Below are positions 3,575 to 43,500 of a stretch of DNA of 64,000 nt, one piece after another. The stretch comes from Diplonema japonicum (lineage: Eukaryota > Protista > Euglenozoa: Diplonemea): positions 372,001 through 436,000 of the forward strand of contig OZ025701.1 in NCBI GenBank assembly GCA_964019335.1. Direction: 5' to 3'. The notes beneath the pieces were generated by a model, which was not told the origin of the DNA, searched no databases, and saw only the letters and a program-made list of their open reading frames with translations. Every line of letters begins with the position of its first letter. Within the stretch, counting starts at the first letter, position 1. Both the position numbers and the translations under genes were made by a program.

Positions 3575-4684
3575 TTACAGTTTGTCGCGATGAGACGGCA
3601 TCTGGGGCGAGGGGGTCAGTTTTTGGTGTTGGCGTAACAGTTCTTTTTGAATCTTGCAAACGGGCACAAATTGTGGGGTTTTGTCCTTTCCGCACTTTAT
3701 CAAACACGGTTCAGCGTGCTCTTCGCCAAAACTACAGAGTTTTTGCGATATAGCAATTGTGTCCATGTTGTTTGGTCTTCTGGCCATCAGCGCTACATAC
3801 ATAGGAGTATACCCGCTGTTGTTCTTCGTGACCTTTGTTTCCTTCAACTTCTCCATCAATGCCAAGGCGGTCGAAACGTCAAGAGACTCGTTAGCAGCCA
3901 GAAGGTGCATTGCGGTGTTCCCGTCACAGTCTGCTTCTCCGAACTCAGTATCATCGGCCACCTCTACTACCTTATCGACAGCATCAAGTACACTGCCTAC
4001 TACTACTTTTTTCCGACATTCAACAATCCAGTGGAGGGGTGTCCTGCCCCAGATGCACAGATCATCTTCTTTCCCATTGCAGCTCAGGAGTTCTATGAAG
4101 CATCTATACTCACCTTCCCGTGCAGCACAGTGTACCGGCGTGAAGCCGTTGGCGTTCACTTTATCCACCAAACCCAAACCTCCAAGCTTTTCCTCAAGGG
4201 TATGGCTATAGTCGCTAGGGTTGATGAGCATCTTTATAATCTCCCTTTGCCCTTTTTTCGCGGCCAAGTGTAAAGCGGTGTCGTCTTTTGTTCTCGTTCC
4301 TTCATTCTTCCTGACTGTCAGTGTCGGGTTGGCCCCCTTCGTCAGTAAGGTTCTGGCAACTTGATTCATGTCTTCTTGACTTAACTCACTATTCCTATCT
4401 GCGAGCAGCATTAGGGGTGTGCACCCTAGATTGTTTCTTATATCTATATGAATCCCCTCGACACTTAGGATGTAGTCGATGCAGGGTTTGTGTCCCTTTG
4501 ACACTGCCTGGTGCAGGGCTGTCCACCCGGCGTGTGTCGTATCGTTGACAGTTGCCACACAAGCGCGCAGAGCCTCAAGGTTCCCACTCCTCGCGGCTAA
4601 CACCGCAAGCGGGTCGTCTGTGTGGCCTTCCCCCGCGATGATGTTGTGGTATTCAAGGAACTCATCCCTATTCAGAGCAGGCAT
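3575..4684 (-). CDS. Ankyrin-repeat protein (diverged paralog A)
   Basis: Repeated GWTALHQA/GCTPLML/DTALHLAA/GFTPVHCA/GRTPLH motifs. Shares the lead-in xFLxxxxI...HxxDPLxVLxARS with the two neighbouring ankyrin genes. Likely ATG at 4684. Confidence 0.9.
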   Translation of the reverse strand: MPALNRDEFLEYHNIIAGEGHTDDPLAVLAARSGNLEALRACVATVNDTTHAGWTALHQAVSKGHKPCIDYILSVEGIHIDIRNNLGCTPLMLLADRNSELSQEDMNQVARTLLTKGANPTLTVRKNEGTRTKDDTALHLAAKKGQREIIKMLINPSDYSHTLEEKLGGLGLVDKVNANGFTPVHCAAREGEYRCFIELLSCNGKEDDLCIWGRTPLHWIVECRKKVVVGSVLDAVDKVVEVADDTEFGEADCDGNTAMHLLAANESLDVSTALALMEKLKETKVTKNNSGYTPMYVALMARRPNNMDTIAISQKLCSFGEEHAEPCLIKCGKDKTPQFVPVCKIQKELLRQHQKLTPSPQMPSHRDKL

Positions 4685-5419
4685 ATGTGTACCCGCCCCC
4701 CCCCCCCCCCCCACTTCCGACCCCGCCTTTGTTTCCCTGTATTAAAAGCCCCCTTTTTCGTGATACAAAGGCTCCCCCCCCCCCCCCCCCCCCCTTCAGA
4801 TTTGCAAAAGAAACCATTTCCAAGCGTTCCGAACCAGATATTCCGACCCAAGAAAGAAAAAAAGAAAAAAAGAAAAAAAGAAAAAAAAAAAAAAAAAAAA
4901 ACATCGAATCCCCCACCCACCCATTTTGTGGCCAACAATGGGCACGCTGGAAATGCTGCACAACAAAATAGGGAGTTTTCTCTCTAAAATTTTAACAAAG
5001 TGAAGGGAAGAAAAAAGTGTTTGCATGCCACGAATGCATCCAGAACGCAAATAAAACTGATTCAAAAACACTAAATATCGAACAAAACTGGGTTTTCTTG
5101 AAAATGGCCATTTTTGGCTTAAAATCCTAAGCCTTGACTTTACACATATTCACTTTTCTTCCTTGCTTAAAACAGTGTTCGCTCATGCAAGAGCCCAAAC
5201 CTTTGGGGGAGTTTTTTAAGAAACACCGTGGCCACCCTTACATTTGGGGTTTCAATAGCCGTCGGGTTCAAGACCCAGGAGATGGCTCCTTCCAACATTC
5301 TACTCCGGAATATGCACAATAATATAAAAAAGAAAAATCAATTGTCAGAAAAAACAATACCGGGGGGGTGGGGGGGGTCATATGGTCCTTAAAAAGGCCC
5401 CCTTATGACCCCCTAGGCA

Positions 5420-6000
5420 TAGTGGTGAGGCGACTCGCATTCTCGCACACTCTCGCACGATTCTCGCACATGCTAGTGTGCACTTCAGGTGTGCATGTGT
5501 CAAAAATAACCCCCCCTCGACCTTCATACTCCTCCCGAACTAACACGATCAGTGCGTTCACGTCCGCCCCCGTGTGTGATTCACCCTCCTCTGAGTATCC
5601 GACCAGCCCAGAAATGTTTGGCACTGGTGGCGTCTGTGCTTAACGGCAACAGTGTCTTTTCGATGCTTTGCTTCACTCTTCTCGAGCCCTTGCCTCCTTC
5701 TCGAATCCGGGCCCCTTTGCCAGCAGCGTGTCTGGTGTCGGTATCTTCATGCGCGAGCTCCACCAATGGGATGCTGAGAAGGGGTGTTTGCTGCTTGGTG
5801 GTTGGTGGTGCCTGCGACCAAACACAACATCGCCCACCCGTCTATGAACTCCTGCCCCACCACGGGGCAAAGCACTGCCTGTTGAGGTCCTTCGAAGATT
5901 TTGACACTCAGGCACCTGGCTTTCCCTGTTGACAGCCAAAAAAAATTCTCGCATCATTCTCGCATGCGAGAATGTGCGGGGGGGGGGGGGGGGGGGTTCG
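5420..6000 (-). mobile_element. Decayed, internally deleted hAT-like transposon remnant; boundaries approximate
   Basis: Frameshifted minus-strand peptides VKQSIEKTLLPLSTDATSAK and GESHTGADVNALIVLVREEY resemble the hAT transposase LTTDxWTS and SHTGENIA motifs in the correct order. TCTCGCA clusters flank them at ~5435-5470 and ~5945-5972. Confidence 0.45.
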
Positions 6001-6189
6001 TCATTGAAGAGAGCCGCGAAACGAGTTCATTGCAGCCAGTGTCTTACAAAATAGCAATTTTCCGTGGTCCCCCAAACACAACGGGTTCTAAACGGGGTAA
6101 AAAGGGGACAGAAAGAAAAAAAAAAAAGAAGAAAAAAAAACACCCTCACCCTCTTGTATTGGTGCACGGCGTCTCAGAAAAACCTTTTA

Positions 6190-6369
6190 GAGAAAAACTA
6201 CAACACGACACGCGAATTTGGATTTTCCACCAAACTCTGTAACCTGTTTTTTACCCTTTGTCCACGGTAATTGGGTTTCCGTGTTTGGTGGAAATCGAAA
6301 TTAGAGTGGAATAACGAAATTCGGGTTGTTTTGAACGGTGTAAATTTTTTCGTGTTTGTAGTTTTTCTC
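6190..6369. repeat. 180-bp foldback/MITE-like element with nested inverted repeats
   Basis: Outer arms: GAGAAAAACTACAACACGA (6190-6208) and the reverse complement of 6350-6369, differing by one indel. Inner arms: AATTTGGATTTTCCACCAAAC (6215-6235) and GTTTGGTGGAAATCGAAATT (6283-6302). Confidence 0.6.
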
Positions 6370-6502
6370 AATTTTTTTTATTAAGCACATCCTGTTCCCC
6401 CCTCTTTTTTTGTTACTCTCATCCCCTTTCGTTCCTCATTAAGCTCCAATCCGGAGAAAAGACACCCCACAGTCGATCATGAACCATAGTGTTTGTAGTG
6501 CT

Positions 6503-7537
6503 CTATGACTTCCCACATTTGTCCTTTTGCATTCTTTGCGCGATGCGCTCCGCTGTAGCTTTCACCCCGTTGAACTTTAGCATTGCAGAGGTGTCTGCAC
6601 CCATCGTCACCAGCTTGTCGTATACCTCCTTCACACCTTTAAGAGCAGCAAGGTGCAAGGGTGTCATCCCGTCGGAGTCGCGTGCTTCAAGATCTGTCCC
6701 CTTCAGCATGTCGAGTGCTTGCAGCACGGTGTCTGTCTGGAGGGTGGTGTTCGCTATAACAGAGTGCATGGCTGTCCGGTCTGTTTCGGACCTCAGATTA
6801 GGGTCACACTTCCCCATGCTGCTCATCAACAGCGAAATTATTTCCAGTACCTCCTTGTCTCCTTCTCCGTTGTCACACTCCATTGCAGCTGCCATATGAA
6901 GGGGTGTCAGACCGCTTTGCCCGCATCCGGTGCTGGGGTCTGCTCCGAAAGTCAAAAGATGTTTCATGTTTTTCACTCGACAGCTCTGAACAGCACAGTG
7001 CAGAGCGTAGTACCCATCGCTGTTCTGCTTATTCTTCGCCATGCAGAGCTCGCCCGTCACCAGGGACAGCGGTTCCGCACCTATCAGAAGCTTTAGGATG
7101 TACTCGTTGCTACTCTTTGCAGCGAGGTGCACAGCACGGTCACCCTTCACGGCCATCCACGAGTCGGCTGCTGGCATCTCTGCTTCCACGTCTGCCTTTG
7201 CTTTCAACAGGCTCATCACAGCTTGTTCCTTTTTCTGGCATATCGCAAGCATCAACGGTGTGTACCCTTGCTTGTTCCTGGCATTGATGTCAAGCCCCAG
7301 TTGCACACCTTCACCCAGCAAGAACTCTACGCATTCATCGTGGCCCTTCGCCGCCGCCTGGTGCAGTGCTGTCCATCCAGAGGGCGATTTCTCGTTGATG
7401 TTTTCTTTGGTGGCACAGTTTTTCAGCGCATCAAGATTATTGGACCTTGCTGAGAGGACCACCAGGGGGTCCTCTTCGTGATTCTTCGTCTCGATGTTGT
7501 AGTTCGCTAGGAACTCGACCCTCTTGAGGGATGTCAT
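6503..7537 (-). CDS. Ankyrin-repeat-only protein (paralog B)
   Basis: Multiple ankyrin motifs (GWTALHQAAAKG, GYTPLMLA, GLTPLHMAA, GMTPLHLAA). Likely ATG at 7537 (MTSLKRVEFL). Confidence 0.92.
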   Translation of the reverse strand: MTSLKRVEFLANYNIETKNHEEDPLVVLSARSNNLDALKNCATKENINEKSPSGWTALHQAAAKGHDECVEFLLGEGVQLGLDINARNKQGYTPLMLAICQKKEQAVMSLLKAKADVEAEMPAADSWMAVKGDRAVHLAAKSSNEYILKLLIGAEPLSLVTGELCMAKNKQNSDGYYALHCAVQSCRVKNMKHLLTFGADPSTGCGQSGLTPLHMAAAMECDNGEGDKEVLEIISLLMSSMGKCDPNLRSETDRTAMHSVIANTTLQTDTVLQALDMLKGTDLEARDSDGMTPLHLAALKGVKEVYDKLVTMGADTSAMLKFNGVKATAERIAQRMQKDKCGKS

Positions 7538-8400
7538 TGCTTCTGTAGTGGTGGTGTGAAAGGACAGACAGCAACAATAAGAACACTGAAAGAAGATGAG
7601 CAAGGTCGGAAAAGAAACACCCTCCCCTATTTTTTCTAGCTATACTATATATGGAGCACAAAGACTCGTGCTAGCGGCCTGCGAGATGGCTGACGCCTCA
7701 TATCTCTGAAATCAATCCCGAACTTGCTCAAAGGGTTTAAAAGGAAAAAAACACAAAAAAAAAAAGCAGTGAGGTTAGGATATTTGCTTTTCGTTGGACC
7801 CATCATTTTTTGATACCCTTCTTTTTGTGTTTCTTCACTTTCCCTCACTTTTTTCTTTCAGCTCTCTGGAAGCAAGCCTTAAAAACACCTGGAAAAAAAA
7901 AAGAGAAAAAAAAAAAAGATTGTTAAACCAAAAAAGGTATTACACACGAAAAAAGAGAAACAAAAATAAAAAAAGGAAGGCCATCCCATTTCCAAGGAAA
8001 GAAAAGTAAACGGTTTCTCAATCTTCAAGCTAAAAAAACAAGACCTTAGTACTCAGTTTTTGACAGATCGACGGAAAAGTTTTCGGGGGGGGGGGGGGGG
8101 GGGGGAGGATGCGCAAACCCGCAAACCCGATGCGACATGCAAACCCCGCGCGAGACCCGCAGGCACCGTTTGAAAAAAGGGGAGGGGGGTATAAAAGAAA
8201 GTCTCTAAAATTACATTCTAATTTCTTCCAATAAAAAAAATAAATATAAAAGCCTTACAGAATACTTCCTCTCGAGTTTTGGCCTGGGCCGGAAGAAAAA
8301 AACCGTAGCGAGCTATAATTACTTCCACCCGAGTTTACAAATGTTCCCCCCATTCTCCTCACCCCCGGGAAGCCAAAAGTCAAGGCATTTGTCAAGCTCC

Positions 8401-8431
<31 letters not shown>

Positions 8432-8439
8432 GAGAAAAT

Positions 8440-8530
8440 ACACATCAATGGACAGGCCCAGACGATGTGCTGAAATCTTTAAAACAAAAAAAGGGGGGAC
8501 AGCGGAGATGTCCGCACCCAGCGTCACCAT
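8440..8530 (-). pseudogene. Orphaned C-terminal tail of an ankyrin gene, just downstream of the duplicated tract
   Basis: MVTLGADISAVPPFFVLKISAHRLG aligns with the ankyrin C-terminus LVTMGADTSAMLKFNGVKATAERIA. DNA gcggagatgtccgcacccagcgtcacca resembles gcagaggtgtctgcacccatcgtcacca. Confidence 0.6.
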
Positions 8531-8552
8531 GAACCATAGTGTTTGTAGTGCT

Positions 8553-11021
8553 CTATGACTTCCTACATTTGTTCTTTTGCATTCTTTGCGCGATGCGCTC
8601 CGCTGTAGCTTTCACCCCGTTGAACTTTAGCATTGCAGAGGTGTCTGCACCCATCGTCACCAGCTTGTCGTATACCTCCTTCACACCTTTAAGAGCAGCA
8701 AGGTGCAAGGGTGTCATCCCGTCGGAGTCGCGTGCTTCAAGATCTGTCCCCTTCAGCATGTCGAGTGCTTGCAGCACGGTGTCTGTCTGGAGGGTGGTGT
8801 TCGCTATAACAGAGTGCATGGCTGTCCGGTCTGTTTCGGACCTCAGATTAGGGTCACACTTCCCCATGCTGCTCATCAACAGCGAAATTATTTCCAGTAC
8901 CTCCTTGTCTCCTTCTCCGTTGTCACACTCCATTGCAGCTGCCATATGAAGGGGTGTCAGACCGCTTTGCCCGCATCCGGTGCTGGGGTCTGCTCCGAAA
9001 GTCAAAAGATGTTTCATGTTTTTCACTCGACAGCTCTGAACAGCACAGTGCAGAGCGTAGTACCCATCGCTGTTCTGCTTATTCTTCGCCATGCAGAGCT
9101 CGCCCGTCACCAGGGACAGCGGTTCCGCACCTATCAGAAGCTTTAGGATGTACTCGTTGCTACTCTTTGCAGCGAGGTGCACAGCACGGTCACCCTTCAC
9201 GGCCATCCACGAGTCGGCTGCTGGCATCTCTGCTTCCACGTCTGCCTTTGCTTTCAACAGGCTCATCACAGCTTGTTCCTTTTTCTGGCATATCGCAAGC
9301 ATCAACGGTGTGTACCCTTGCTTGTTCCTGGCATTGATGTCAAGCCCCAGTTGCACACCTTCACCCAGCAAGAACTCTACGCATTCATCGTGGCCCTTCG
9401 CCGCCGCCTGGTGCAGTGCTGTCCATCCAGAGGGCGATTTCTCGTTGATGTTTTCTTTGGTGGCACAGCTTTTCAGCGCCACAAGATTATTGGACCTTGC
9501 TGAGAGGACCACCAGGGGGTCGTGCTCATGGCCGCGAATGTTTGAGATCTGGTGTTGACTGAGGAAGTCCTCCCTGCCGAGGGGCCACACTTCCACATTG
9601 TAGTTCTCCATCACAACTTGTATCTGAGTAAGGTCGCCTGAGTTGAAGGTGCTGATCTTCCTGAAACGGCCAAGAGCGAAGAGCAGGACTTCTTTTTCTT
9701 TCTGGAGGACGCTGTAGTCGGACATCATTACGCCTTTGGCGTTTTCAATGACGAAGATGACCCGCCGGCCTACGGATCCGACAAAGCTCTTGTTCAACAC
9801 ACCCATTTCCTCTGTGCAGGAAGTCACGGCGGGGAACGTGAATTCCTCACCGTCCTTGATCATGTTGAAGTATTTCACGATGGCCCCTGTACGGTCGTGC
9901 ATACCTCGGTAGACGGTTCTAACATACGGCTTTTCCCTCCTGAACGCCTCCAGCAGGAAGCTCAGGTATGGGATGAAGGGTTGCAAGGAAGAACTACCGT
10001 TTCGAAGTCGCTGGTTGAGCAATCTATATAAAGCAATGGTCTCCTCAATACTGTATATAGTGAATGCCCTTCGGTGGTCGTTTGGTTCTTGTTTCACAGC
10101 GATGTCGTAGTGCTTGTGGATACGGGGTATGAAGTTTTTTAGAGGCTCGATGGCTTCTTTAAGAGTAGCCGGCGGTTTCATGTTGGTGAGAATGTCAACA
10201 ATGTTGAACATGGAACTCTTTGAGGACATTTGAACGGGGCTGGTGTCATCGCCCAAGTCATTTATCGACACGAAGATGAACTCCTCGATTTTCTCGTTGA
10301 TCATTCGCTTGGAAGGGTTTTCCACCACCATTTTCGAAATAAGGAGCCGTTCCTTGTCCGTCATGCCCTTTACCAAGCCAAGATCATGGATGAACAGCTT
10401 CATATCGACCGCCCATTTCACCCTGTTACCCTTCACCATAATGTTTTCAAACTCAGATGTTTCAACCCTCATGAATAATATTGTAATGCCGAACGCCCAC
10501 ACGTCTGATTGGATTGTCGCAATGCTCTCTATTTGTTCCGGTGCAGCGTATATGTTGGTATAGGTGGTTCTAACAGTTTTCTTTAAACAGATGTTTCCGA
10601 GGACGTACCTGGTGCGGCCCGCTCGCTCCTCGATGAAAATGTTTTTCGGGCAGATTTTCTGGTGTGCGAAGCCGATGTAGTGTAGAAAAGAAAACGCTTG
10701 AAAAATGTCGCGGGCTAGGCCCATGCTTGCCTGCAACGATGTAAACGGGCCGTTCGTTGTTTTGTACGCTTCCAGGTTTCCGAGAACATAGTATCTGGTA
10801 TAGATGAAAAAATGTTCGTCACTACTGATGTGAGTGAGCATCACTTCCAACGTGCGGTGGGTGTTTTCTTTGAGCTTTTCGAGCAGCCCAGCACGGACTT
10901 CTTGCATCTCCACCTTCTTCAGCATGGCCTTCTTCCCCTCCCATGTCGTGATTCCCACGTTTTGGCTATCGGTCATCTTCTTCACCTGCTCCTTGCTGCA
11001 AGGATCCATGAAGAAACTCAT
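8553..11021 (-). CDS. Pseudokinase - R-S-E ADP-ribosyltransferase - ankyrin repeat fusion protein (~822 aa)
   Basis: Kinase fold with APE and SDVWAFG but HRD replaced by HQK and DFG by NIC. ART domain with YRLLNQRLR, VYRG, FPAVTSCT and QKEKEVLL. C-terminal ankyrins. Likely ATG at 11021; the upstream K-rich stretch is UTR read-through. Confidence 0.85.
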   Translation of the reverse strand: MSFFMDPCSKEQVKKMTDSQNVGITTWEGKKAMLKKVEMQEVRAGLLEKLKENTHRTLEVMLTHISSDEHFFIYTRYYVLGNLEAYKTTNGPFTSLQASMGLARDIFQAFSFLHYIGFAHQKICPKNIFIEERAGRTRYVLGNICLKKTVRTTYTNIYAAPEQIESIATIQSDVWAFGITILFMRVETSEFENIMVKGNRVKWAVDMKLFIHDLGLVKGMTDKERLLISKMVVENPSKRMINEKIEEFIFVSINDLGDDTSPVQMSSKSSMFNIVDILTNMKPPATLKEAIEPLKNFIPRIHKHYDIAVKQEPNDHRRAFTIYSIEETIALYRLLNQRLRNGSSSLQPFIPYLSFLLEAFRREKPYVRTVYRGMHDRTGAIVKYFNMIKDGEEFTFPAVTSCTEEMGVLNKSFVGSVGRRVIFVIENAKGVMMSDYSVLQKEKEVLLFALGRFRKISTFNSGDLTQIQVVMENYNVEVWPLGREDFLSQHQISNIRGHEHDPLVVLSARSNNLVALKSCATKENINEKSPSGWTALHQAAAKGHDECVEFLLGEGVQLGLDINARNKQGYTPLMLAICQKKEQAVMSLLKAKADVEAEMPAADSWMAVKGDRAVHLAAKSSNEYILKLLIGAEPLSLVTGELCMAKNKQNSDGYYALHCAVQSCRVKNMKHLLTFGADPSTGCGQSGLTPLHMAAAMECDNGEGDKEVLEIISLLMSSMGKCDPNLRSETDRTAMHSVIANTTLQTDTVLQALDMLKGTDLEARDSDGMTPLHLAALKGVKEVYDKLVTMGADTSAMLKFNGVKATAERIAQRMQKNKCRKS

Positions 11022-11119
11022 CTCAACTTTTCTTTTCCCTCCCCCCCCTTTTTTTTTCTTTGAACAAAAAAAAATCGAATCTCGTTTTCTTTTTTTTTTT
11101 TTTTTTTTTTGAGAAAAAA

Positions 11120-11750
11120 ACAACGTCCACGGTAACCAAATAACTTTTTTTCCACTCAAGTCTGTAAGCAGAATTTCCACCACTGTTTACGGTAACCCAC
11201 AACTTTTTTTTCCACTCTCCACGGTAACCTACAACTTTTTTTTCCACTCAAATGGTTTTTTGTAAAAAATTTCCACTCTCCACGGTAACCTATTTTTATT
11301 TCCACCAAACCATGTAAGTAAGAACTTTTTTTCCACCGTCCACGGAAACCCACAACTTTTTTTTCAACGTCCACGGTGGAGGTGTATGCACTTGGGAAAA
11401 ACGTGTAGGCACAACCAGGGCTCGAAAAAAGACACTAAGAATTTCTCCTGGAAGTTGGCAAGGGCGATTTCCAAAGACGATTTAAAGCCAAAGCCGAGGT
11501 ATCTGGCGTCTGATGTACTTCTCCACCCCTCGCCCCCCTGCCTGTGAAGGATATGCCAAGGATGACTTCAAGCCCCCTGTTGTCACGAAGTCACAGATAG
11601 GCAGTGCTGTGCTACATTTCGTACTAACCCCAATGAGGTATAAAAATGTCGGAGGTTACCGTGGACGGTGGAAAAAAAGTTAGTGGTTGCATAAGGGAAA
11701 TTGTTGGTGGTTACAGTAAAAAGTGGAAAAAAAGTTGTAGGTTTAAGGCG
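11120..11750. mobile_element. Foldback-like element with inverted arrays of a ~30-bp unit (TTTTTTCCACNNTCCACGGTAACCNACAAC)
   Basis: About 6-7 degenerate units at 11120-11380 and 2-3 inverted units at 11654-11743, around a ~270-bp unique core. Confidence 0.6.
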
Positions 11751-11808
11751 ACGGTGTCCCCCCCCTTTTTTTTTTTTTTTTTTTTTTCCCCTTCGTTCCC
11801 CTTCTCTC

Positions 11809-12057
11809 CTATTTACGTGTATTTTGTTGAAGGTCAACGTTTTCCTGTAGCAATTGAAAGGCTAGGCGCTCTGCTTGGTCCCTTTGTTCTTCCGCTACTG
11901 CTATTCTGTCCCTGTCAGAGGCGGTCAGCTCCTCTTCGGAGGGATCGGGTTTTCGGGTGGTAATGCAGTGGAGAACCGAAACCACCACTGTTGCGGTAAC
12001 CCACAAGACAAGTGCTTTATCGCAAGGCCGTTCACCCAAGGCTGCGACAGCATCCAT
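11809..12057 (-). CDS. Small hypothetical protein with one hydrophobic segment and a coiled-coil tail
   Basis: 82-aa ATG-started ORF on the gene strand, with coding-like composition between low-complexity flanks. Confidence 0.45.
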   Translation of the reverse strand: MDAVAALGERPCDKALVLWVTATVVVSVLHCITTRKPDPSEEELTASDRDRIAVAEEQRDQAERLAFQLLQENVDLQQNTRK

Positions 12058-12100
12058 TTCCCCTCTGTTGTTTTCGTAATGTATGGGGAGGGGGGAATTT

Positions 12101-12141
<41 letters not shown>

Positions 12142-12166
12142 GAATCTCCTTTTGTGCAAAGGGGGG

Positions 12167-12511
12167 CTAGCTCGAATCGCTGTCGCTATCATTCTCAACA
12201 GTCAGAAAAAGCTTCTTGAAATATTTGATGTGTTTTGCGGTGAGGGTGTCCAGGGTGAGGTCCTCGCAAGCCATTCCTTCCTCGACCAGAGAAAGGAAGT
12301 TTTCCTCTGTGAAAATTCTTTCTGCGTGGTACTGCTTCCTGGCAATCACCTCCTTCACGATTTCAGAGCCACATTTTTCGATGATTTCCTTGACTTCTGC
12401 AACAGTCAGCTTCCCGTCTCCATCGTCACTTTCCATTTTTTTAAAGATGCTCAATAGTCGGTTGGTGGCCTTCTCCTTGCCCAATGGTTTTGTTTTGGCC
12501 TCATCTTTCAT
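12167..12511 (-). CDS. Small EF-hand-like protein
   Basis: FKKMESDDGDGKLTVAEVKEII is an EF-hand-like helix-loop-helix. Confidence 0.6.
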   Translation of the reverse strand: MKDEAKTKPLGKEKATNRLLSIFKKMESDDGDGKLTVAEVKEIIEKCGSEIVKEVIARKQYHAERIFTEENFLSLVEEGMACEDLTLDTLTAKHIKYFKKLFLTVENDSDSDSS

Positions 12512-13435: not shown

Positions 13436-14059
13436 TCAAGCCTGCTGCGACCTGATGTACTGGATTTTCTTCGTCTGAAACCCGTTGAAGGCGGAGGCAG
13501 CTGCTAACGTGTAGGCGCCAAAGTCGTAAAAGATCATCCAATCACCAAGCTACAATTTTTTTTTTTTTTTTTTTTTTTTTTTCCCCACACACCTCCATTT
13601 CTGGGAAGTCAATTCTCTTAGCAATGCAGTCCAACCCGTCGCATGTCGGCCCGAAGATGGTGGTGCACCTCTTCTCAGCGTCCTTCTCATCCTCGGGTTT
13701 CATGAAGAAAGGGTGCGCATCCACAATAGCATGATCAAAGAACAAACAATTGAAACTCTGGTAAACTCCTTCGTTCAAATAGTACTGAACTTCCTGCTTT
13801 GTGGATCCCGACACCTCGTCTTCCACAAAGCTGATCTCCCTCTTGGCGAATACGTTGGCAGCCAAGGTGTGCGAGGCACACGCGAAATATCTACCAGGCT
13901 CTGCGATAATCTGCACATCATTTGGGAACAGCTCGTCCAGCACGGGAGCAAGGTGGTTCGCAATCTCCTTGAACGTCGGTTTAGTCTCCTTGTCACCGGG
14001 GAACCCTCCACCGATGTCGAGGAGGTCCATCTGAAAAAAAAAGATTTTTTTTTTTTGAG

Positions 14060-14092
<33 letters not shown>

Positions 14093-14568
14093 GATGCCTC
14101 TTTCCTCTGCCATGTCGAATACGGTTCTGGCGTCCTTTGCAGCTTGCGAGAAGGCAGTGGCGTCTCCGCAGCCCGACCCCACGTGGAAGCTGACACCGAC
14201 GAGTTTCAAACCAAGCTGGACGCAAGTGTCGATGAGCTTTGGAACGTACGACAGTTGCGCACCGTACTTTGACGAGAACTCGCAGATGCTCTTGGAGTCG
14301 TCCGTAACAATTCTCAAGACAACGTTGGCCCCCGGCCAGTGTTTGCAGATCTTCGGGAGCTCCGCTTCGTTGTCGAAGGTGACGTATTTCAAACCGTGCG
14401 AAGCGGCGGATTTGATGTGAGCAACCTGCTTGCAAGGGTTCGCAAAGATGATGTCCTGGGCTGGGTCCATCTTCAGGTCCTGCAGAACATGTTCAAACTC
14501 CGCCTTGCTGGCACAATCGAAACCTGTACCAAGCGCAGCAAGTGTGTCAAGAAGAACTGGGGCGCCCT

Positions 14569-24571: not shown

Positions 24572-26422
24572 TCACGGCTCGCTGAGTACCATGAACCTGT
24601 CGCGCAGCCTCCTCTTAATGGCGAAGAAGTCCGTGTCAAAAGGACGGAAAGCAGGGCGGAATGTATCGGCGAGGACTCCAGGAATGGATTCTTCCAACGG
24701 CTTAACCTCCTTCTCCAAGCGTTCGGTTGCCAGACTGGACTCTTTAAGACATTTTTCAAGGAATGTGCGAAGCTCTGTTTCGTAGAGGTCGGTTGCTGGG
24801 CTTTTCTTTGCCGTCATCGCCAGTTTTATGATTTCCTTCTCATTAGGCGTGTGCACATCACTCTTGCTATTCACAAGCATTGCGTACAAAGGCCCAAGCA
24901 AGACTTCCGTCTCCTTCGGGTACTTGCTGATGTCCTGCAAGGGCAGACCTTTGTCCACGTCGTTTATTGTGAACAGGATACCGCCTATCCCGCCCTTTGT
25001 TGCATTTGCCGCTTCCCCGTTAATGTAACTCTCTGCTACTGCGGCATCGGTTCCGCATGACGATGGTGCACCCCAGTTCACTTCACTGCCCGGAACCAAG
25101 GCGTTGTGTGTGTCAAGAAGCCCTTCACTCCTGGCTGCCAGGCCTCTTGAGAGCTGCCCTACGTTTGCATCTGTCGTGTAACACATTGCCATTAGCAAAC
25201 AAGCCGTTTTGATCCATTGTCCCAATGTCTTCCAGGATTCGTTGTCCTCTGAGGGGGCATTCGCTGCCTTCCGCATGGGGCCGTTTACCGAGCTGTACAT
25301 CGGTGCGTTCCTATCCTTGTACAGCTCCTTGTACTCATTCCATTCGGTTTCGTCCTCGGAGTCGTACTCGGGTACCCCAGGGTACGACATCACCATGTCG
25401 ATGTCAGGCCCCGCCATCGTGTACAGCGCCATGTTCAGCAGGTCGATGCGGTTCTTGTTTGGGTAGAATTTAGACTTTTCCTCAGTCAGTTTCTTGGAGG
25501 CCTCAGCAAATACAAGCAGCTTCCCCTCACCCTCTACAGGCGCTTTGTAGTTGGCAAGCATTTCGTCAAGGATGTCTCCTTTCTTCGCTTCCCACATCTT
25601 GATCAGCCTCCTCAGTACCGCGTGCCTGTCGATCAAAATGCCTTCTCTCAATGATTCGGAAGCCGCGTGGAATTTTTCTTTGCAGACGTGCACTGAGGTT
25701 TTCAGCACAGACTTCCCTGCACGCTTTGCGGCCATCAGGTTATTAATAGTGCTAGCCTTTCCGGTGAGGAGATTCCCCGCGACGGAACGGAGGCCCTCTG
25801 TGGTCATCCCGCCTCTATGATACGCTTTGTTGACATGTTCGCAGAGCAGGGTGAAGTCCTCCTCGCTGTCTGTTAAGTTTATCGAAAGATCGTTGCACAG
25901 AGCAGAGTACTCTTCGTGGTCGAGGGCACCATCGTCGTTCTCGTCGTAGGCGGTGAACAGTGTTGCGATGATGTCGGTGTTGTCCTCTAGGTCCCAGCAG
26001 GTGTCAGCGAAGACAGCGGCCACATACATGGTGCCGTCAACCTCCACAGCACCAACACCAATATTGGCTGCTTGAGGGCGCAGGAGGATCGCACGGTCAT
26101 CCGGGTTTTCAGCTGCCCACTGGCGCACAACGGCAATGCCAGACGAGAAGGCCCCACGGCAGCAGGTGATGGCGATGCCACTGACCTTGCCATACAGCTT
26201 TGCAGTTTGTAACAACCTCTGCGATTGAATACCCCCGCCCTGTGATATTTTCATAGCTGCCGACTGGGCCGTCTTGCTCAAGGCACCGCTTTCTACTAAC
26301 GGCTGGAGGACACTGGCTTCAAAGGTATCGTCGCCAGCAAGAACGGCCAGGGCCTTCGGCGATGCCCTCATCCCATTGAGGGTGACAACAACCTCAGCAG
26401 CAAGTATTTTCGCGTCTACCAT
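24572..26422 (-). CDS. Degenerate CAP domain - EF-hand - R-S-E ADP-ribosyltransferase, paralog 1 (intronless)
   Basis: Shortened CAP-like N-terminus. EF-hand loop DENDDGALDHEEY. ART motifs ALYT, YSSVNGPMR, LSRGL, WGAPSSC and SKYPKETEVLL. Confidence 0.8.
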   Translation of the reverse strand: MVDAKILAAEVVVTLNGMRASPKALAVLAGDDTFEASVLQPLVESGALSKTAQSAAMKISQGGGIQSQRLLQTAKLYGKVSGIAITCCRGAFSSGIAVVRQWAAENPDDRAILLRPQAANIGVGAVEVDGTMYVAAVFADTCWDLEDNTDIIATLFTAYDENDDGALDHEEYSALCNDLSINLTDSEEDFTLLCEHVNKAYHRGGMTTEGLRSVAGNLLTGKASTINNLMAAKRAGKSVLKTSVHVCKEKFHAASESLREGILIDRHAVLRRLIKMWEAKKGDILDEMLANYKAPVEGEGKLLVFAEASKKLTEEKSKFYPNKNRIDLLNMALYTMAGPDIDMVMSYPGVPEYDSEDETEWNEYKELYKDRNAPMYSSVNGPMRKAANAPSEDNESWKTLGQWIKTACLLMAMCYTTDANVGQLSRGLAARSEGLLDTHNALVPGSEVNWGAPSSCGTDAAVAESYINGEAANATKGGIGGILFTINDVDKGLPLQDISKYPKETEVLLGPLYAMLVNSKSDVHTPNEKEIIKLAMTAKKSPATDLYETELRTFLEKCLKESSLATERLEKEVKPLEESIPGVLADTFRPAFRPFDTDFFAIKRRLRDRFMVLSEP

Positions 26423-26552
26423 ATTCAGTGTATTACCCCCTGTGTACAACCGATAAGGGTTTGCAAAAAAAAAAAAGAACTTTGGTAAACAACAACAAGG
26501 TACCATGGGGCATCGCCTGCCGTGTAAGTGCAGTGCCCATCGAAGCCAGATG

Positions 26553-28779
26553 CTAGAGTGCATCGTAGCGCGTCATGGCCTTCTGACCACCCACAGGGGT
26601 GTCGTAATACGTGCGGTGGGGTGCAGTGGCAGGGCGGGTGGCTTCCGCTGCCTGGGGGCTTGAACTAAGCGAGCGTTCGCTGGATTCATGCCAGTTCCCG
26701 CCATGAAGCATTGAGGGTCCACCGCCGTGGCTCATTCCCCGCAGTTTTCTTCTCATTGTGAAGAATTCAGCGTTGTATGGCCGCGTTGCAGGTCTGTGGT
26801 GGTGTTATAAACAAAAGTGCAACATACCCCAAAGCTGCAGCAAGAGTCTGAGGGATAGTCTTGTCAAGCTGCTCAGTCTGCTTCAGCAGGCGGGGCACTG
26901 CGTTCTCCGACTCCACAAGACACTTCCCTATGAAGCCACGGAGTTCTTCTTCGAATGCGGTGTTGGACGAGCTGTTTTGTGGTGGCAAGGTGTCTGCTGC
27001 ATACTTGAAAGATGCCATCTCAATGCTAACGATGTCGGTGCTGTTGGGGGCAGAACGGAGGCCTCTGTAGAATATCTTGAAAGTCGACAACGGAGAGAGA
27101 AGGACTTCGGCTTCTTTGGGGTACTTGCTGATGGACTGCAGTGGGATCCCACGTTGCGCGCTTGAGATAGAGAAAAGTACTGAACCGCCACTACCCTTGG
27201 TGGCGTTGGCGGCGGCACCATTCACATAGTTCTCAGCCACGGTGGGGTCGGTGGCGCACGATGAAGGAGCGCCCCAGACAATTTCTTCACCGGCCACCAC
27301 GCCGTTGTGCAAGTCGACGACACTTTGTGGTAGTGCAGCGAGCCCCCTGGACAGCATGCCTCGTACACCAGCTTCCATAGTCCCGCACAGTGACATGAAC
27401 AAACAGATTGTTTTGATCCACTTCCCCACCGTGTCCCACGCTTCGCCTGTTCCCTTAGGGTCGGCAGATGCCATTCTCATCGCCCAATTAATGGCGCTGA
27501 ACATTGCCCCGTTCCTGTCCTTGTGTGTCGTTTTGTACTCATCCCACTGCGCAGTGTTCATCTCGTCGTACTCGGGTACCCCAGGGTACGACATCACCAT
27601 GTCGATGTCAGGCCCCGCCATCGTGTACAGCGCCATGTTCAGCAAGTCGATGCGGTTCCTGTTTGGATACATGGTAGACTTTGCCTCTTTCAGTTTCCTG
27701 GCCACCTCCGCAAGTAAAAGCAGCTTCCCCTCACCCTCTACAGGCGCTTTGTAGTTGGCAAGCATTTCGTCAAGGATGTCTCCTTTCTTCGCTTCCCACA
27801 TTTTGATCAGCCTCCTCAGTACCGCGTGTTTGTCGATCTTGAGAGAAGCCTGTGCAGCCCCCTTCGATGCTTCGTTCATTTTATCTATGTTGACTTGGTT
27901 CGAAGTTCTCAGCACAGACTTCCCTGCACGCTTTGCGGACACCAGCTGGTTGATGAGATCGGCCTTACCTGCGAGGAGATCCCCCGCAACGGCACGGAGA
28001 CCCTCTGTGGTCATCCCGCCTTTGTGTGGGGCTTTGTTCACGTGTTCGCAGAGCAGGGTGAAGTCCTCTTGACTGTTGGGAGATTCTATCGAAAGATCGT
28101 TGCACAGAGCAGAGTACTCTTCGTGGTCGAGGGCACCATCGTCGTTCTCGTCGTAGGCGGTGAACAGTGTTGCGATGATGTCGGTGTTGTCCTCTAGGTC
28201 CCAGCAGGTGTCAGCGAAGATGCCTGCAATGTAGATTCTGCCGTCGGTGCCCTCTGCTGCAGCGATGCCCATGTAGCCTGCTTCTTTGCGGAGGAATGTT
28301 TCGCGGTGTGTTCTGTCTGCGTCACCGTCATGGACGATCCACGAGATGACGACGGAGTTCCCGGTGTTGAAGAAACCACGTGAGCAGTTCATCTCGATGA
28401 GGCCGCTTACCTTGCCGTACATACGGACAGACTGCAGCAGCGTCATGTTTTCAGGATGGACATGTTCAATGCCGCCGTGCTCAGCCATACGCAGGGCGGC
28501 TCTGTCCGCCGCCTTCTGCAAAGCTGCACTGTGAACCAACGGAGGCAGAGCCTCTTGCTTCTTCATGAACTCAGACGCGACCTCGTACGCAGCGGAACCC
28601 TCCCGCAGCTGTATACCCCTGTCCCACCCTGGAAGGATCAAAACCTGTTGCGAGTCGACATATAACTCTTCCGACTCCACCAGAGCCCCCATGGCGCCAG
28701 GTGCTGTCCTCGCTCCATTCGCTGCAATAATAATCTCTGCCGCTAGAGTCGGGCACAATGCGGCTTCCGTCTCTGACAT
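26553..28779 (-). CDS. CAP domain - EF-hand - R-S-E ADP-ribosyltransferase, paralog 2; intron 26794..26827
   Basis: Protist-type CAP pattern (NxxRxxP...EG..A....FM..Q..LPPL..S..L..AA...DG..DR.HR..F). Same EF-hand. LSRGL, WGAPSSC and SKYPKEAEVLL. The spliced tail GPATRPYNAEFFTMRRKLR matches RPAFRPFDTDFFAIKRRLR in paralog 1. Confidence 0.82.
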
Positions 28780-40545: not shown

Positions 40546-43500
40546 TCAAACCTCACGGCAGTACATAACAGGCTTTTCCCACGAAGACCGTCCAGTAGCT
40601 GCATCACAGTAATACGGAAAACCCTCAGACGTTGTGAATTCAACCCATTTCTGAGCAGTAGGGACAGGGGGGACTGTGGGAAGAGTGGACCTCTTAGAGG
40701 CACGCTTTATTTTAGAGAAATCACACTGAAGACCAATTACAGGCTTCACCCATGTGGTCTCACCCGTTTGGGTGTTATAGTAATATGTCTGATCGGTGTC
40801 ATCCGAGCGGTACTCAAGCCAGTTGGCAGGATTACCTTTAGCGGTGCGTAGCTTGAGCCTGGTGAGGAAACCTCTTATAGTACTTTGTATTTTGATGATT
40901 TTCATGACTTCTGTCAAGGGCATCATCTCTTCTTGTTCGATACTGATGTCAGCTAAGAGGATCTGTTGTTGCTTGTGTAGCTTTTCTTCATGCTTCTGGG
41001 GTAGCGCGGCACCAAAGGCTTGGTGGAAGAGCTTTGGGAATAGCTCGCTTCGGTAGATGACTGGAGGCTCCCCATGCACCCTCAAGTCCAGCGATGCAAT
41101 GAATTCACTCACGATTTTGCTGTCGGGATACAGCCCCAACGGAGGCCCGATGCCCTTCAAGAATTTTTCTAAATTGGAAAACGGCAGTTTTTGCCCGGTG
41201 CCATGTTTCTCCCACTGCCTTCGCAGCACTACTCTGTACGGCTCGTCAAGACACCGCACCCCTGTGCCAAAATTGTCCAACACCACCGCCACGAACAGGT
41301 TCGACAGCACATACATCCCCACCAATGTGAACGAGCAAAAATATATTGGCGCCCACCACCTGGGAATGCACCCTCCCAAGTGATCATCGCAGCCCTCGTC
41401 CTCATCAGCCATGCAGTCATACATGATCTGCTGCCAGGCCTCTCCCGTTGACAGTCTAAAAAGAAGCAACAGCGCAGGGCCGAAATGGGTGAAGTTCGCA
41501 TGTCGGTTCAATCCGTTTATCCATGTCGCCTTACCGAGAAGCCACACGCCCAGGATCTGTTTGTTTGTTTCGTTTCGTTTTCCATCTTTTGTTACATACC
41601 GAATACACAAAAAACAGTAGAAACAGCACGCACGAGACGTTAACAAGAGAAGGTATCGAAAACAAGAAGGTGGTCAGCATGCGGCGGATCCCACGCGAGG
41701 ACCGCATCATCCTCAGGAGTCTGATCAATCGCAGGGCTCGGAACTGTGTTATGACATCTGCCTCGCCGCTGTGATCTTTACCAAGAAGGTGGAAGAAGAA
41801 GAGAAGCAACAGCGGGATCATAGAAACTACAACAACACCCAAGTCAAACCGGCACCAAGGATTGCGGAGGTACCGTGCAGGACCGAACGCGAGGATTTTA
41901 AGAACAACCTCCACAGCGAAGACACCCAGCATGCATTCATTGAGCCTGGCTATCAAAGAGTCGAAGGTTTCAGACGAGGGGTGGTGCTCGCTTGCCATTC
42001 CAATCACATTCACCGCGATACAAAAACTGATCGCTATGTCGAACCGGCTGTCGGTGACAAACATAAACAATTTCGTGCGCCACGCAGAGTACCCAAACGG
42101 GACTTCCTCACTTATCCCATCTGTTACCATTTGTAACATCTCCATATGTGCCCTGACCCATCGATCCTGGCCGGGTGACAGGAACAAAGAAGCTCCAACT
42201 TTTTGTTTTTGTGTTGAGTATGTATCGATGAGAACTCCAATGAAGAGGTTCAGAATGAGGAACGACCCGAACACGATGAATAGAACAAAGAAGTACGCCA
42301 CCCAAGGAGAGTTTCCCTGCACAGGCGCGTGCTCATAGCTAACAGCGTCTATGCTATCGTGCATCACCCCCACCCACCCCTCCAGCGACGCTACCTGGAA
42401 CAACGTCAAGAAGGAGTTTCCAATGTTGTCGAAGTTTGCCATGCTGTTCATCCACTTGTACTCCCCACCCAAAGGCGCTGTGGCGTTTAAACACGCATCA
42501 CGTGTGAAGAACTGCGGAGTATCGCCATATGTGTCCAGCGAGCACCTGTGAAACTTCCCTGAGAATAATTGCAGAGCGATAATGGCGAACACAAGCCAGA
42601 TCGACAGCGATATGAGCGTGACGTTCACCAACGGTGGGAAGGAGAGCAGCATTGCCGTGAATACGACTTTCACGCCTTGCACCTTGTTGATGAAGCGCAG
42701 GGGGCGTAGCGTTCGTAGAATCTTGAACATCCCGAAGTGTTGGGCCCCAGGGATTATCTCCTTTGCCAACGACGTGCACACAATGAAGAAATCCAACCTG
42801 TTCCAGACCTCTCTGCGCAGGTACGAGTCCTCATGCAGAACAAACCCGTACGCGACGCTCTTCAGAACGCACTCAGTGAGGAACACGAATGTCAAGTAGA
42901 AGTTAACAGCACGCAGTTTGACTTCCGTCGGGTGGTCTTCTGGCCGCAGTGGCGTGTCAATGGCAAGTGCGACAGTTGATGTGAAGATAGCAGCCAGCAC
43001 GAGAAGCTCGAACGCCGTGCTCTCAACCACCATGAAGAGGACATCGCGGGCGGGGTGCTCTCTCTCGAAGTAGAACAGCGACCGATCCGTGACGACAGGA
43101 GCCCAGTTGTACCACCATGCCCTCTTGTTCTTCGCCTGCCTTTCAAGCGTGTCGTAGAATTCACTGTACTCCGTCTCCTTTGCTGCCTTGTCGTCGCACC
43201 AATCTTCAATGAACAGGATTTCCCTGTCCTCCAGCTGCAATGTGTCCTGCACTGTCTGCCCCAGCAAACTAGGGGAGTCTTCGTAGCTGTGCACAAAACT
43301 AGTGATTTGGTCCACATCGCACAGTTTCGAGTCGTGCGACAAGAAGATTTCTCTCAAGCGTGACGTGATGCACCTCCTGTCCCTGCGGGCCATGTCATCC
43401 GCTGCGACCCATGCTGCAAACATCCCGTAGATCTCCGTGTGGTGCTCAGGGTACTTCAGTAACATGCACGACTCAAAGAGGCGCGGATCATCCGCGTAGC

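Follow-up and report, generated by a model that had tools for sequence, protein, structure and literature searches.

Diplonemids are a very abundant group of ocean protists, and the genome of one of them, Diplonema japonicum, contains a gene that raises a question of function: what is done by a protein that joins a kinase-like domain, an ADP-ribosyltransferase (ART) domain, and ankyrin repeats in a single chain, and does it serve in defense? The gene, here called gene A, is followed by two genes, B and C, that encode ankyrin repeats only. It was analyzed within a stretch of 64 kb (contig C54:372001-436000; the window) of a genome of 62.5 Mb in 132 contigs, obtained as a HiFi assembly (PMC13598402). 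A preliminary description of the window, made from the sequence alone, had proposed an innate-immunity module. We favor, with a probability of roughly 60%, another reading, in which gene A encodes an expressed, single-copy, three-domain enzyme that works as a targeted regulatory protein modifier and not as a dedicated immune module. Because ARTs are habitually fused to many partners across this genome, this is the most economical reading. Each of the domains exists elsewhere, as do ART-ankyrin and kinase-ART fusions; our literature search found no paper on diplonemid ARTs or on the three-part kinase/ART/ankyrin combination. The coordinates of the features are collected in Table 1.

The open frame of gene A spans 8553 to 11183 on the minus strand, and its true start is the ATG at 11021. 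The frame upstream of this codon merely crosses a poly-A/T tract, and P0151, a protein from the EukProt Trinity transcriptome of D. japonicum, begins at the same ATG. P0151 matches the genomic open reading frame (ORF) residue for residue over all 822 amino acids (aa). The coding sequence of gene A is therefore intronless and expressed, and D. japonicum is the source of the window. The description of an intronless gene fusing kinase-like, ART, and ankyrin domains was thus borne out, with Pfam matches above the curated gathering cutoffs (22.3 bits for PF01129 and 31.7 bits for PF00069), and the gene is not silent, a case for which the preliminary description had allowed. Expression was read from the EukProt transcriptome; the public sequencing runs with pieces of the locus resemble DNA contigs. 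Two runs labeled as other organisms (X11 and X12) contained pieces of the locus at 100% identity and low depth, and they probably derive from the same culture or holobiont, deposited under the name of a different organism. The N terminus of the gene A product (MSFFMDPCSKEQVKK) is not hydrophobic by eye, with no N-terminal hydrophobic signal visible, and the protein is predicted to be cytosolic. No paralogue above 35% identity was found for the kinase-ART part in the D. japonicum genome; this part is single-copy.

The ART domain gave a PF01129 match of 36.6 bits at aa 307 to 469. A homologue search with aa 246 to 476, which took in 1.84 billion protein representatives, yielded 730 matches. Conservation was assessed in two alignments, one of 63 ART relatives (A2) and one of 31 ART ORFs of the D. 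japonicum genome (A6). The R (VYRG), STS-like (TSCT), and ExE (EKE) motifs, reported earlier as intact, all proved to fall in columns of A2 and A6 that are invariant or nearly so, and translation confirmed the positions of VYRG (9903 to 9914, minus strand) and TSCT (9813 to 9824, minus strand). The helix residues Y332, N336, L339, and R340 also occupy nearly invariant columns in A2 and are conserved in A6. The EKE motif aligned with KEAEVLF of Vis. When compared with solved structures, the A2 profile matched Vis, Tre1, HopU1, rat ART2.2, SpvB, XopAI, and ExoT. An ART fold, one of the checks named in the preliminary description, was predicted by AlphaFold with a pLDDT of 87.9 and a pTM of 0.85. 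A Foldseek search with this model returned 128 PDB matches at an E value of ≤0.001; the top ones were all R-S-E ARTs with a probability of 1.00, led by Vis, HopU1, ART2.2, XopAI, C3, and Tre1 at identities of 12 to 20%. In this clade, E-x-E rather than Q-x-E marks arginine as the expected acceptor. It is reasonable to expect the same of gene A, as had been proposed, because its nearest solved relatives by profile and fold (Vis, HopU1, ART2.2, and Tre1) are ExE ARTs described as arginine specific.

The kinase-like domain matched Pkinase (PF00069) with 47.9 bits over aa 50 to 244, corresponding to profile positions 52 to 256 of 263, and a degenerate remnant of the N lobe precedes it at aa 1 to 46. 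The neighbors of aa 1 to 280 by ESM features were all protein kinases. In an alignment with the structures of MELK and CDPK1, AHQKICPKN of gene A faced AHRDLKPEN: HQK stands for HRD and a cysteine for the lysine, and the asparagine is kept. Aligned with MELK and CDPK structures, the DFG segment reads V-LG-N, without an aspartate. These alignments confirmed the loss of catalytic residues noted before (HRD to HQK, DFG to NIC). The Gly loop GxGxxG is gone as well: gene A has ITTWEG where its counterpart in Diplonema ambulator, P0002, has GKGAFG. In the same comparison, a short deletion was found at the expected strand β2, and Lys35 (β3) of gene A lined up with the AVK lysine of P0002. The structural motifs of the C lobe, namely, AAPE, SDVWAFG (DxWxxG), and the arginine of PSKRM, are kept. 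Such retention of structural motifs after the catalytic ones are gone is the usual signature of a maintained pseudokinase. Judged by its sequence, the domain is kinase derived and lacks the catalytic apparatus, which makes it a predicted pseudokinase.

P0002 (EukProt EP01059, TRINITY_DN2176_c1_g1_i3) is an uncharacterized protein of 824 aa, known as a protein sequence from the D. ambulator transcriptome. It was the sole non-self match below 1e-30 among the 1.84 billion representatives. It is collinear with gene A across the kinase, the ART, the lead-in, and the ankyrin repeats and has the same ART triad. Conversely, the best match of P0002 in the D. japonicum genome was gene A (1.3e-85), followed by gene B, a generic kinase, and gene C. 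The preliminary description had held that a single-copy, conserved gene under purifying selection would speak against its proposal. This was found in part, in that the kinase-ART part is single-copy and has a collinear reciprocal best hit in D. ambulator. The count of the architecture that it had called for gave a single case in D. japonicum (31 ART segments scanned) and the same domain order in D. ambulator. Identity between the two proteins was 30% overall; the ART was the best-conserved domain (42%), the kinase-like domain was the least conserved (24%), and the ankyrin module reached 34.5%. The ART thus appears to be the constrained part of gene A. The kinase of P0002 displays GKGAFGS, AVKK, HRDIKPAN, and DLG (segment GDLGF) and scored 123 bits over the whole Pkinase profile versus 47.9 bits in gene A; from these motifs, it is apparently active. 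Because P0002 is collinear with gene A and its kinase motifs are intact, the three-domain architecture would predate the species split, and the kinase would have died on the D. japonicum side. Word-based homologue searches with gene A and P0002 returned only the two proteins themselves and generic kinases, blanks that mean little, and a scan of metagenome contigs with an alignment of the D. japonicum and D. ambulator sequences gave no confirmed locus.

Five ankyrin families of Pfam matched gene A above their cutoffs (Ank_2 with 114.8 bits and Ank with 111 bits), and AlphaFold gave a confident helical repeat model for the ankyrin module. This module was found three times in the D. japonicum genome, all at one locus, in genes A, B, and C. 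Gene B is 95% identical to the tail of gene A, and gene C is 32 to 36% identical to that tail and to B. The start codons of genes B (7537) and C (4684) fall on a common position of the lead-in, M-[TP]-[SA]-L-[KN]-R-x-EFL, which suggests that both genes go back to a partial duplication of the 3′ part and a later, second duplication. Two ankyrin-only siblings sharing an unusual lead-in had been described before; the siblings and their shared start stand, but the lead-in is not a separate motif class, as it consists of a short linker and then the start of the first ankyrin-type helical repeat. A search with an ankyrin profile retrieved generic ankyrin proteins only, a blank that means little.

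Genes A and B share a 994-bp tract that extends 25 bp beyond their stop codons. Within it, the coding differences amount to 4 nonsynonymous and 0 synonymous changes, all at the tract ends (8564, 8573, 9470, and 9482 in A; each position 2050 lower in B) and too few for a selection test. Upstream of the tract, the lead-ins of A and B differ from each other as much as either differs from that of C. The simplest reading of these sequences is that B may be an old paralogue recently overwritten by gene conversion with A, as opposed to a very recent duplication. A direction of conversion and the idea of an "old tail" were considered and dropped, as the A/B, C, and D. ambulator tails are roughly equidistant (34 to 37%). 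We also considered whether the duplicate, spaced by 2,050 bp, is an assembly artifact. This was rejected, since the depth of run X2 was 31 in the tract versus 13.6 in the unique part of A (about 2.3-fold), supporting two copies, and the genome is a HiFi assembly (PMC13598402). A contig of run X1 among the Logan contigs joins 6477 to 8528 and most plausibly reflects a de Bruijn path across the sequence common to A and B. A transcriptome isoform, P0001, consists of the body of gene A followed by the last eight residues of gene B (QKDKCGKS) and differs from P0151 there alone. It may be a Trinity chimera across the tract or an allele; alternatively, it may stem from RNA reads carrying the 3′ end of B. 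Stand-alone B and C proteins were absent from the protein collection, and no expression evidence was found for C.

The ART family of the genome was then compared with gene A. PF01129 matched at least 45 ORFs. Partner domains were tallied in windows of about 3.4 kb around 30 matches, in which a kinase more than about 500 aa from the ART would be missed. Ankyrin repeats were present in 18 of the 31 ART ORF segments (gene A, itself among the 18, and 30 paralogues), and a kinase match no more than about 500 aa away from the ART was seen in gene A alone. Further partners include WGR/PARP_reg, tubulin, a UDG-like region, and CAP. In a quick maximum-likelihood tree with SH-aLRT support only, the gene A ART grouped with P0002 and with a paralogue at C66:42520, apart from the ART-ankyrin array genes. 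The array genes number 17 (about 940 to 1110 aa; contigs C96, C91, C66, C49, C105, and C106; L003-L011, L015-L017, L019-L022, and L027) and form a separate clade with branch lengths of 0 to 0.09 and 98% SH-aLRT support; several of them stand in tandem on one contig. This set appears to be recently amplified and would be a better candidate than gene A for a conflict-type expansion. Because its ART lies outside the amplified clade, gene A is taken as an old singleton and not as a part of that family. At least six ARH-type hydrolase genes, possible erasers, were also found in the genome, none of them linked to the gene A locus. Named relatives of the gene A type of ART came from diplonemids and bdelloid rotifers, with LRR, TPR, CH, YTH/KH/RRM, and kinase partners.

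Several members of this family deserve mention on their own. The closest ART paralogue of gene A, at about 42.5 kb of C66 (C66:42520; L064:1405-3216, minus strand), is 35% identical and has the same insertion after the catalytic arginine; it carries D-K-G in place of E-x-E, followed by a Cys/Pro-rich tail without a Pfam match, and is probably a catalytically dead ART. At about 72.7 kb of C73 (L066:3195-4946, minus strand), a protein of 584 aa has WGR and PARP regulatory domains and then a PF01129 ART, with no PF00644 match, an arrangement that would place PARP1-like sensor domains on the "wrong" catalytic clade. At about 587 kb of C25 (L065:3189-4859, minus strand; P0038), an intact ART follows a UDG-like N terminus with GQNPYP, recognized by eye, for which Pfam gave no match; this protein is 51% identical over 549 aa to a Diplonema papillatum protein annotated as "Uracil-DNA glycosylase." An ORF of 1843 aa at about 699 kb of C15 (L070:2856-8384, plus strand) has an ART at aa 737 to 859 and a tubulin GTPase domain at aa 1629 to 1822, and two more ART matches lie 6 and 11 kb downstream of it. 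Six ORFs of the scanned ART set also matched Toprim_4. Outside this genome, the metagenomic protein P0010 (1109 aa; 28 near-identical members on contigs of 8 to 44 kb) has an exotoxin-type ART, TPR repeats, a kinase that looks active, and another ART, which matches PF01129 (96.8 bits); its MLKL_N-like match is weak, at 26.3 bits versus a cutoff of 27 bits, and the nearest named relatives of its ART type are Adineta rotifer proteins.

Of the 24 ORFs in the window with 250 aa or more, 22 are encoded on the minus strand; long same-strand gene runs are typical of euglenozoan polycistronic units. The GC content of the gene A region is about 0.45 to 0.51, in a window that ranges from 0.33 to 0.57. 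The spacers between A, B, and C are filled with multicopy repeats. The 1.1-kb element upstream of gene A has 265 matches genome-wide (40 of 183 candidates scored) and very high contig depth; its terminal inverted repeats end in long A/T homopolymers, and it contains about six subterminal repeats of about 43 nt with the core CCACGGTAACC. The idea that this element split a longer gene by severing the kinase N lobe was rejected: the ORF beyond it, at 12167 to 12511, encodes an unrelated 114-aa protein that is separate in the transcriptome, and the N terminus of gene A aligns with P0002 from residue 6 on. Neighboring genes encode WD40 proteins, a small EF-hand-like protein, an ornithine-decarboxylase fragment, a SPRY protein, two CAP-ART proteins, ion channels, an EF-hand protein, and a racemase. 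Of the earlier picture of a transposon-littered island among housekeeping genes, the repeats stand; the neighbors are ordinary cellular genes plus the two ART genes about 15 kb away, and not strictly housekeeping genes.

Three of these neighbors showed further features. The ORF at 13542 to 14435 (minus strand), in a low-GC stretch at 12 to 18 kb, matches an ornithine/DAP/arginine decarboxylase only from the end of the PLP-binding domain through the C-terminal domain; either the gene is truncated, or an intron or element interrupts it. Two tandem genes at 24572 to 28779 (minus strand), some 15 kb away from gene A, have an N-terminal CAP domain, and both match the ART-family profile C-terminally, the second with a weak PF01129 match (20.7 bits versus the cutoff of 22.3 bits); they group loosely, on long branches, with the gene A ART in the quick tree. 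At 40546 to 45775 (minus strand), a four-domain Ion_trans channel ORF (1414 aa) and the next ORF downstream, which contains an Ion_trans end and two WW domains, share about 115 bp; the two may belong to a single gene that carries a frameshift or small intron.

Table 1. Coordinates of the features at the gene A locus (positions in the window)
Feature	Position	Strand	Basis or remark
Gene A coding sequence including stop codon, 822-aa kinase-like/ART/ankyrin protein	8553-11021	-	ORF; exact match to P0151; Pfam domains
Kinase-like (predicted pseudokinase) domain, aa 47-244	10290-10883	-	Pkinase, 47.9 bits; MELK/CDPK alignment; ESM feature matches
HQK replacing the catalytic-loop HRD, aa 120-122	10656-10664	-	Structure alignment; translation
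LGNIC replacing the DFG segment, aa 141-145, no Asp	10587-10601	-	Structure alignment; translation
Predicted ARTC-type (R-S-E) mono-ADP-ribosyltransferase domain, aa 280-475	9597-10184	-	PF01129; profile matches; AlphaFold; Foldseek
Arg372 of VYRG, R of R-S-E	9906-9908	-	Invariant in A6, nearly so in A2
Ser401 of TSCT, S of R-S-E	9819-9821	-	Sole invariant column of A2
Glu442-Lys-Glu444, ExE (ARTT) motif	9690-9698	-	Both Glu nearly invariant in A2 and A6
Ankyrin-repeat module with lead-in, aa 480-822 of gene A	8556-9584	-	Ank families; AlphaFold pLDDT mostly >85
Gene B, ankyrin-only, 344 aa from ATG 7537	6503-7537	-	ORF (6503-7603); Pfam; last 8 residues occur in P0001
Gene C, older ankyrin-only paralogue, 369 aa from ATG 4684	3575-4684	-	ORF (3575-4714); Pfam; alignment
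994-bp tract, copy in gene B	6478-7471		blastn, 99.5% identity to 8528-9521
994-bp tract, partner copy inside gene A	8528-9521		blastn
Dispersed repeat of ~550 bp in the C-B spacer	5411-5980		30 or more other loci at 80-97% identity; high depth
Nonautonomous element with 53-nt terminal inverted repeats and subterminal repeats	11058-12161		36 bp upstream of the gene A ATG

According to the reading we favor, the ancestor of gene A would have been a dual writer, with a kinase and an ART directed to substrates by the ankyrin repeats, and only the ART would still work in D. japonicum. The ankyrin module would bind one or more protein partners, and the ART would transfer ADP-ribose from NAD+ to arginine on the bound proteins or on itself. 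The dead kinase may be a scaffold or a regulatory appendage, or it may be decaying. Genes B and C would be partial 3′ duplicates encoding the ankyrin module alone; B, homogenized with A over 994 bp, would present the same binding surface and plausibly competes or adapts for the same ligands. Several points weigh against this reading. An identity of 30% is low for congeners and could reflect either fast evolution, which would fit a conflict role, or out-paralogues; as a rough yardstick, the D. japonicum and D. papillatum versions of the UDG-like/ART fusion share 51% identity in a comparison taken as deeper. In the full-length AlphaFold model, pLDDT was below 50 at aa 1 to 81, 113 to 220, and 231 to 273, where the alignment held just two sequences, and low confidence over most of aa 1 to 273 leaves retention of the kinase fold unproven. 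The arginine specificity and the activity of the gene A ART are read from motifs and fold only. The direction of conversion and any functional link among A, B, and C are inferred, and for expression, B has solely the possibly chimeric isoform P0001 and C has nothing found so far.

Gene A might instead be a decaying lineage-specific gene, under relaxed constraint since the death of the kinase in a region rich in transposons, with B and C as nonfunctional partial duplicates and the transcripts as by-products of polycistronic transcription. The badly degenerate kinase domain (24% identity, no Gly loop, and low AlphaFold confidence) would fit such decay, as would the transposable element 36 bp upstream of the ATG, the absence of B and C from the protein collection, and the loss of ExE in the closest ART paralogue, C66:42520. 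However, the frame is open over 822 codons, and all four catalytic residues of the ART are kept together with the hallmark helix Y332, N336, L339, and R340. The kinase C lobe has likewise kept its structural motifs (APE, DxWxxG, and the arginine of PSKRM) while the catalytic ones are gone, and the frames of B and C are open over their full lengths, with start codons aligned. We therefore regard decay of the whole gene as doubtful.

The immune reading, in which a ligand from a pathogen or symbiont is sensed through the ankyrin repeats, the ART is gated by the pseudokinase and then depletes NAD+ or ADP-ribosylates targets, and B and C act as unattached sensors or decoys, we consider unlikely. 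It would be consistent with the low identity to the sole known counterpart (30%, versus 51% for the other ART fusion across a comparison taken as deeper), with a locally duplicated ankyrin module held identical by conversion, and with a neighborhood rich in transposable elements. The host also carries intracellular bacteria, which are Holosporales endosymbionts (PMC13598402), and metagenomic P0010 joins the same type of ART to a kinase and the weak MLKL_N-like match (26.3 versus 27 bits). However, Pfam matches in A, B, C, and 20 neighboring ORFs included no NACHT, NB-ARC, TIR, death-fold, or MLKL_N domain; the kinase-ART part occurs once, without arrays or expansion in copy number, and the amplified set of 17 near-identical ART-ankyrin genes belongs to a different clade; and selection could not be assessed from only four coding differences in the tract. 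The same architecture with an apparently active kinase in D. ambulator means that gating by a pseudokinase would not be ancestral. Because the pseudokinase looks like a lineage-specific decay of a kinase still active-looking in the sister species, and its pLDDT is below 50, gating of the MLKL type is pure analogy. The defense reading received no support from any test run and is weakened, with nothing that ties gene A to immunity, and the strong divergence (30%) keeps a conflict role possible.

A related proposal, that A and B form an enzyme-antagonist pair in which A is a cytosolic arginine ADP-ribosyltransferase, B is its substrate-binding ankyrin module in free form (an antagonist, decoy, or guard), conversion keeps B matched to the specificity of A, and the dead kinase is a switch, a eukaryotic toxin-antitoxin-like or guard-decoy arrangement based on ADP-ribosylation and possibly directed against intracellular bacteria, seems to us quite improbable. 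Very improbable is the horizontal acquisition of a bacterial effector-like gene from an endosymbiont or prey (kinase, ART, and ankyrin domains being common in Legionella- and Holosporales-type effectors): the solved structures nearest to the gene A ART are bacterial toxins and effectors, and D. japonicum hosts Holosporales endosymbionts (PMC13598402), but, among sequence relatives that carry names, the nearest come from eukaryotes (namely, D. ambulator, D. papillatum, and rotifers of the genus Adineta), the GC content of the region (about 0.45 to 0.51) is within the range of the window (0.33 to 0.57), the ORFs of 250 aa or longer run, with two exceptions, in the direction of gene A, as is typical of euglenozoan polycistronic units, the gene A architecture is common to the congener D. 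ambulator, and no bacterial protein with the same three-domain order has been seen so far.

To our knowledge, few eukaryotic writers of intracellular arginine ADP-ribosylation are known, since vertebrate ARTC enzymes act outside the cell. Read as a targeted modifier, gene A would have an ARTC-type domain built into a cytosolic, signaling-style protein together with a kinase-derived domain and a substrate-binding repeat. The pair of gene A and P0002 would amount to a natural experiment in which one of two catalytic domains of a dual modifier dies. The at least 45 ART and at least 6 ARH-type genes suggest that diplonemids use R-S-E ADP-ribosylation as a general regulatory modification. The single locus is moderately interesting, and the genome-wide ART pattern is the bigger story.

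How does gene A compare with known systems? Rapidly diversifying conflict families have many recent paralogues or arrays, whereas the kinase-ART part of gene A is single-copy and its ankyrin module occurs in three copies at one locus. Active kinases need the Gly loop, the HRD aspartate, and the DFG aspartate, and gene A has none of the three. Like MLKL-type executioners, it places a dead kinase domain beside an effector domain; unlike MLKL, it lacks the four-helix bundle MLKL_N (no PF22215 match at an E value of ≤0.1), and its dead state would be recent, as the counterpart kinase looks active. Tankyrase offers an analogy, since its ankyrin repeats recruit substrates to an ADP-ribosyltransferase in the same chain; it is built of ankyrin clusters, SAM, and an H-Y-E PARP (PF00644), whereas gene A has PF01129 and C-terminal ankyrin repeats and no PF00644 or SAM match. 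The ART-ankyrin array genes have an N-terminal R-S-E ART followed, as in gene A, by C-terminal ankyrin repeats, but they carry no kinase, and their ankyrin modules are unrelated to that of gene A at an E value of <1e-10. Kinase and ART also meet in one chain in clusters of the ESM Atlas with Pkinase and PF01129 (766 to 781 aa; 52, 56, 431, and 68 members), which are a lead only, and in P0010, where the order differs (ART, TPR, MLKL_N-like, kinase, ART). P0002 has the same domain order as gene A, a similar length (824 versus 822 aa), and the same lead-in, and of the two it alone keeps the kinase motifs. Vertebrate ecto-ARTs (ART1-5) are single-domain proteins with a signal peptide, whereas the ART of gene A lies between a kinase-like domain and ankyrin repeats behind an N terminus that is nonhydrophobic by eye. 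Vertebrate ART2.2 is a GPI-anchored ecto-enzyme, and the bacterial relatives are secreted toxins or effectors. With the R-S-E/ExE enzymes of the ARTC clade (Vis, HopU1, Tre1, and rat ART2.2), gene A shares PF01129, the R, S, and E-x-E residues, and the predicted fold; unlike them, its ART would sit inside a large cytosolic multidomain protein.

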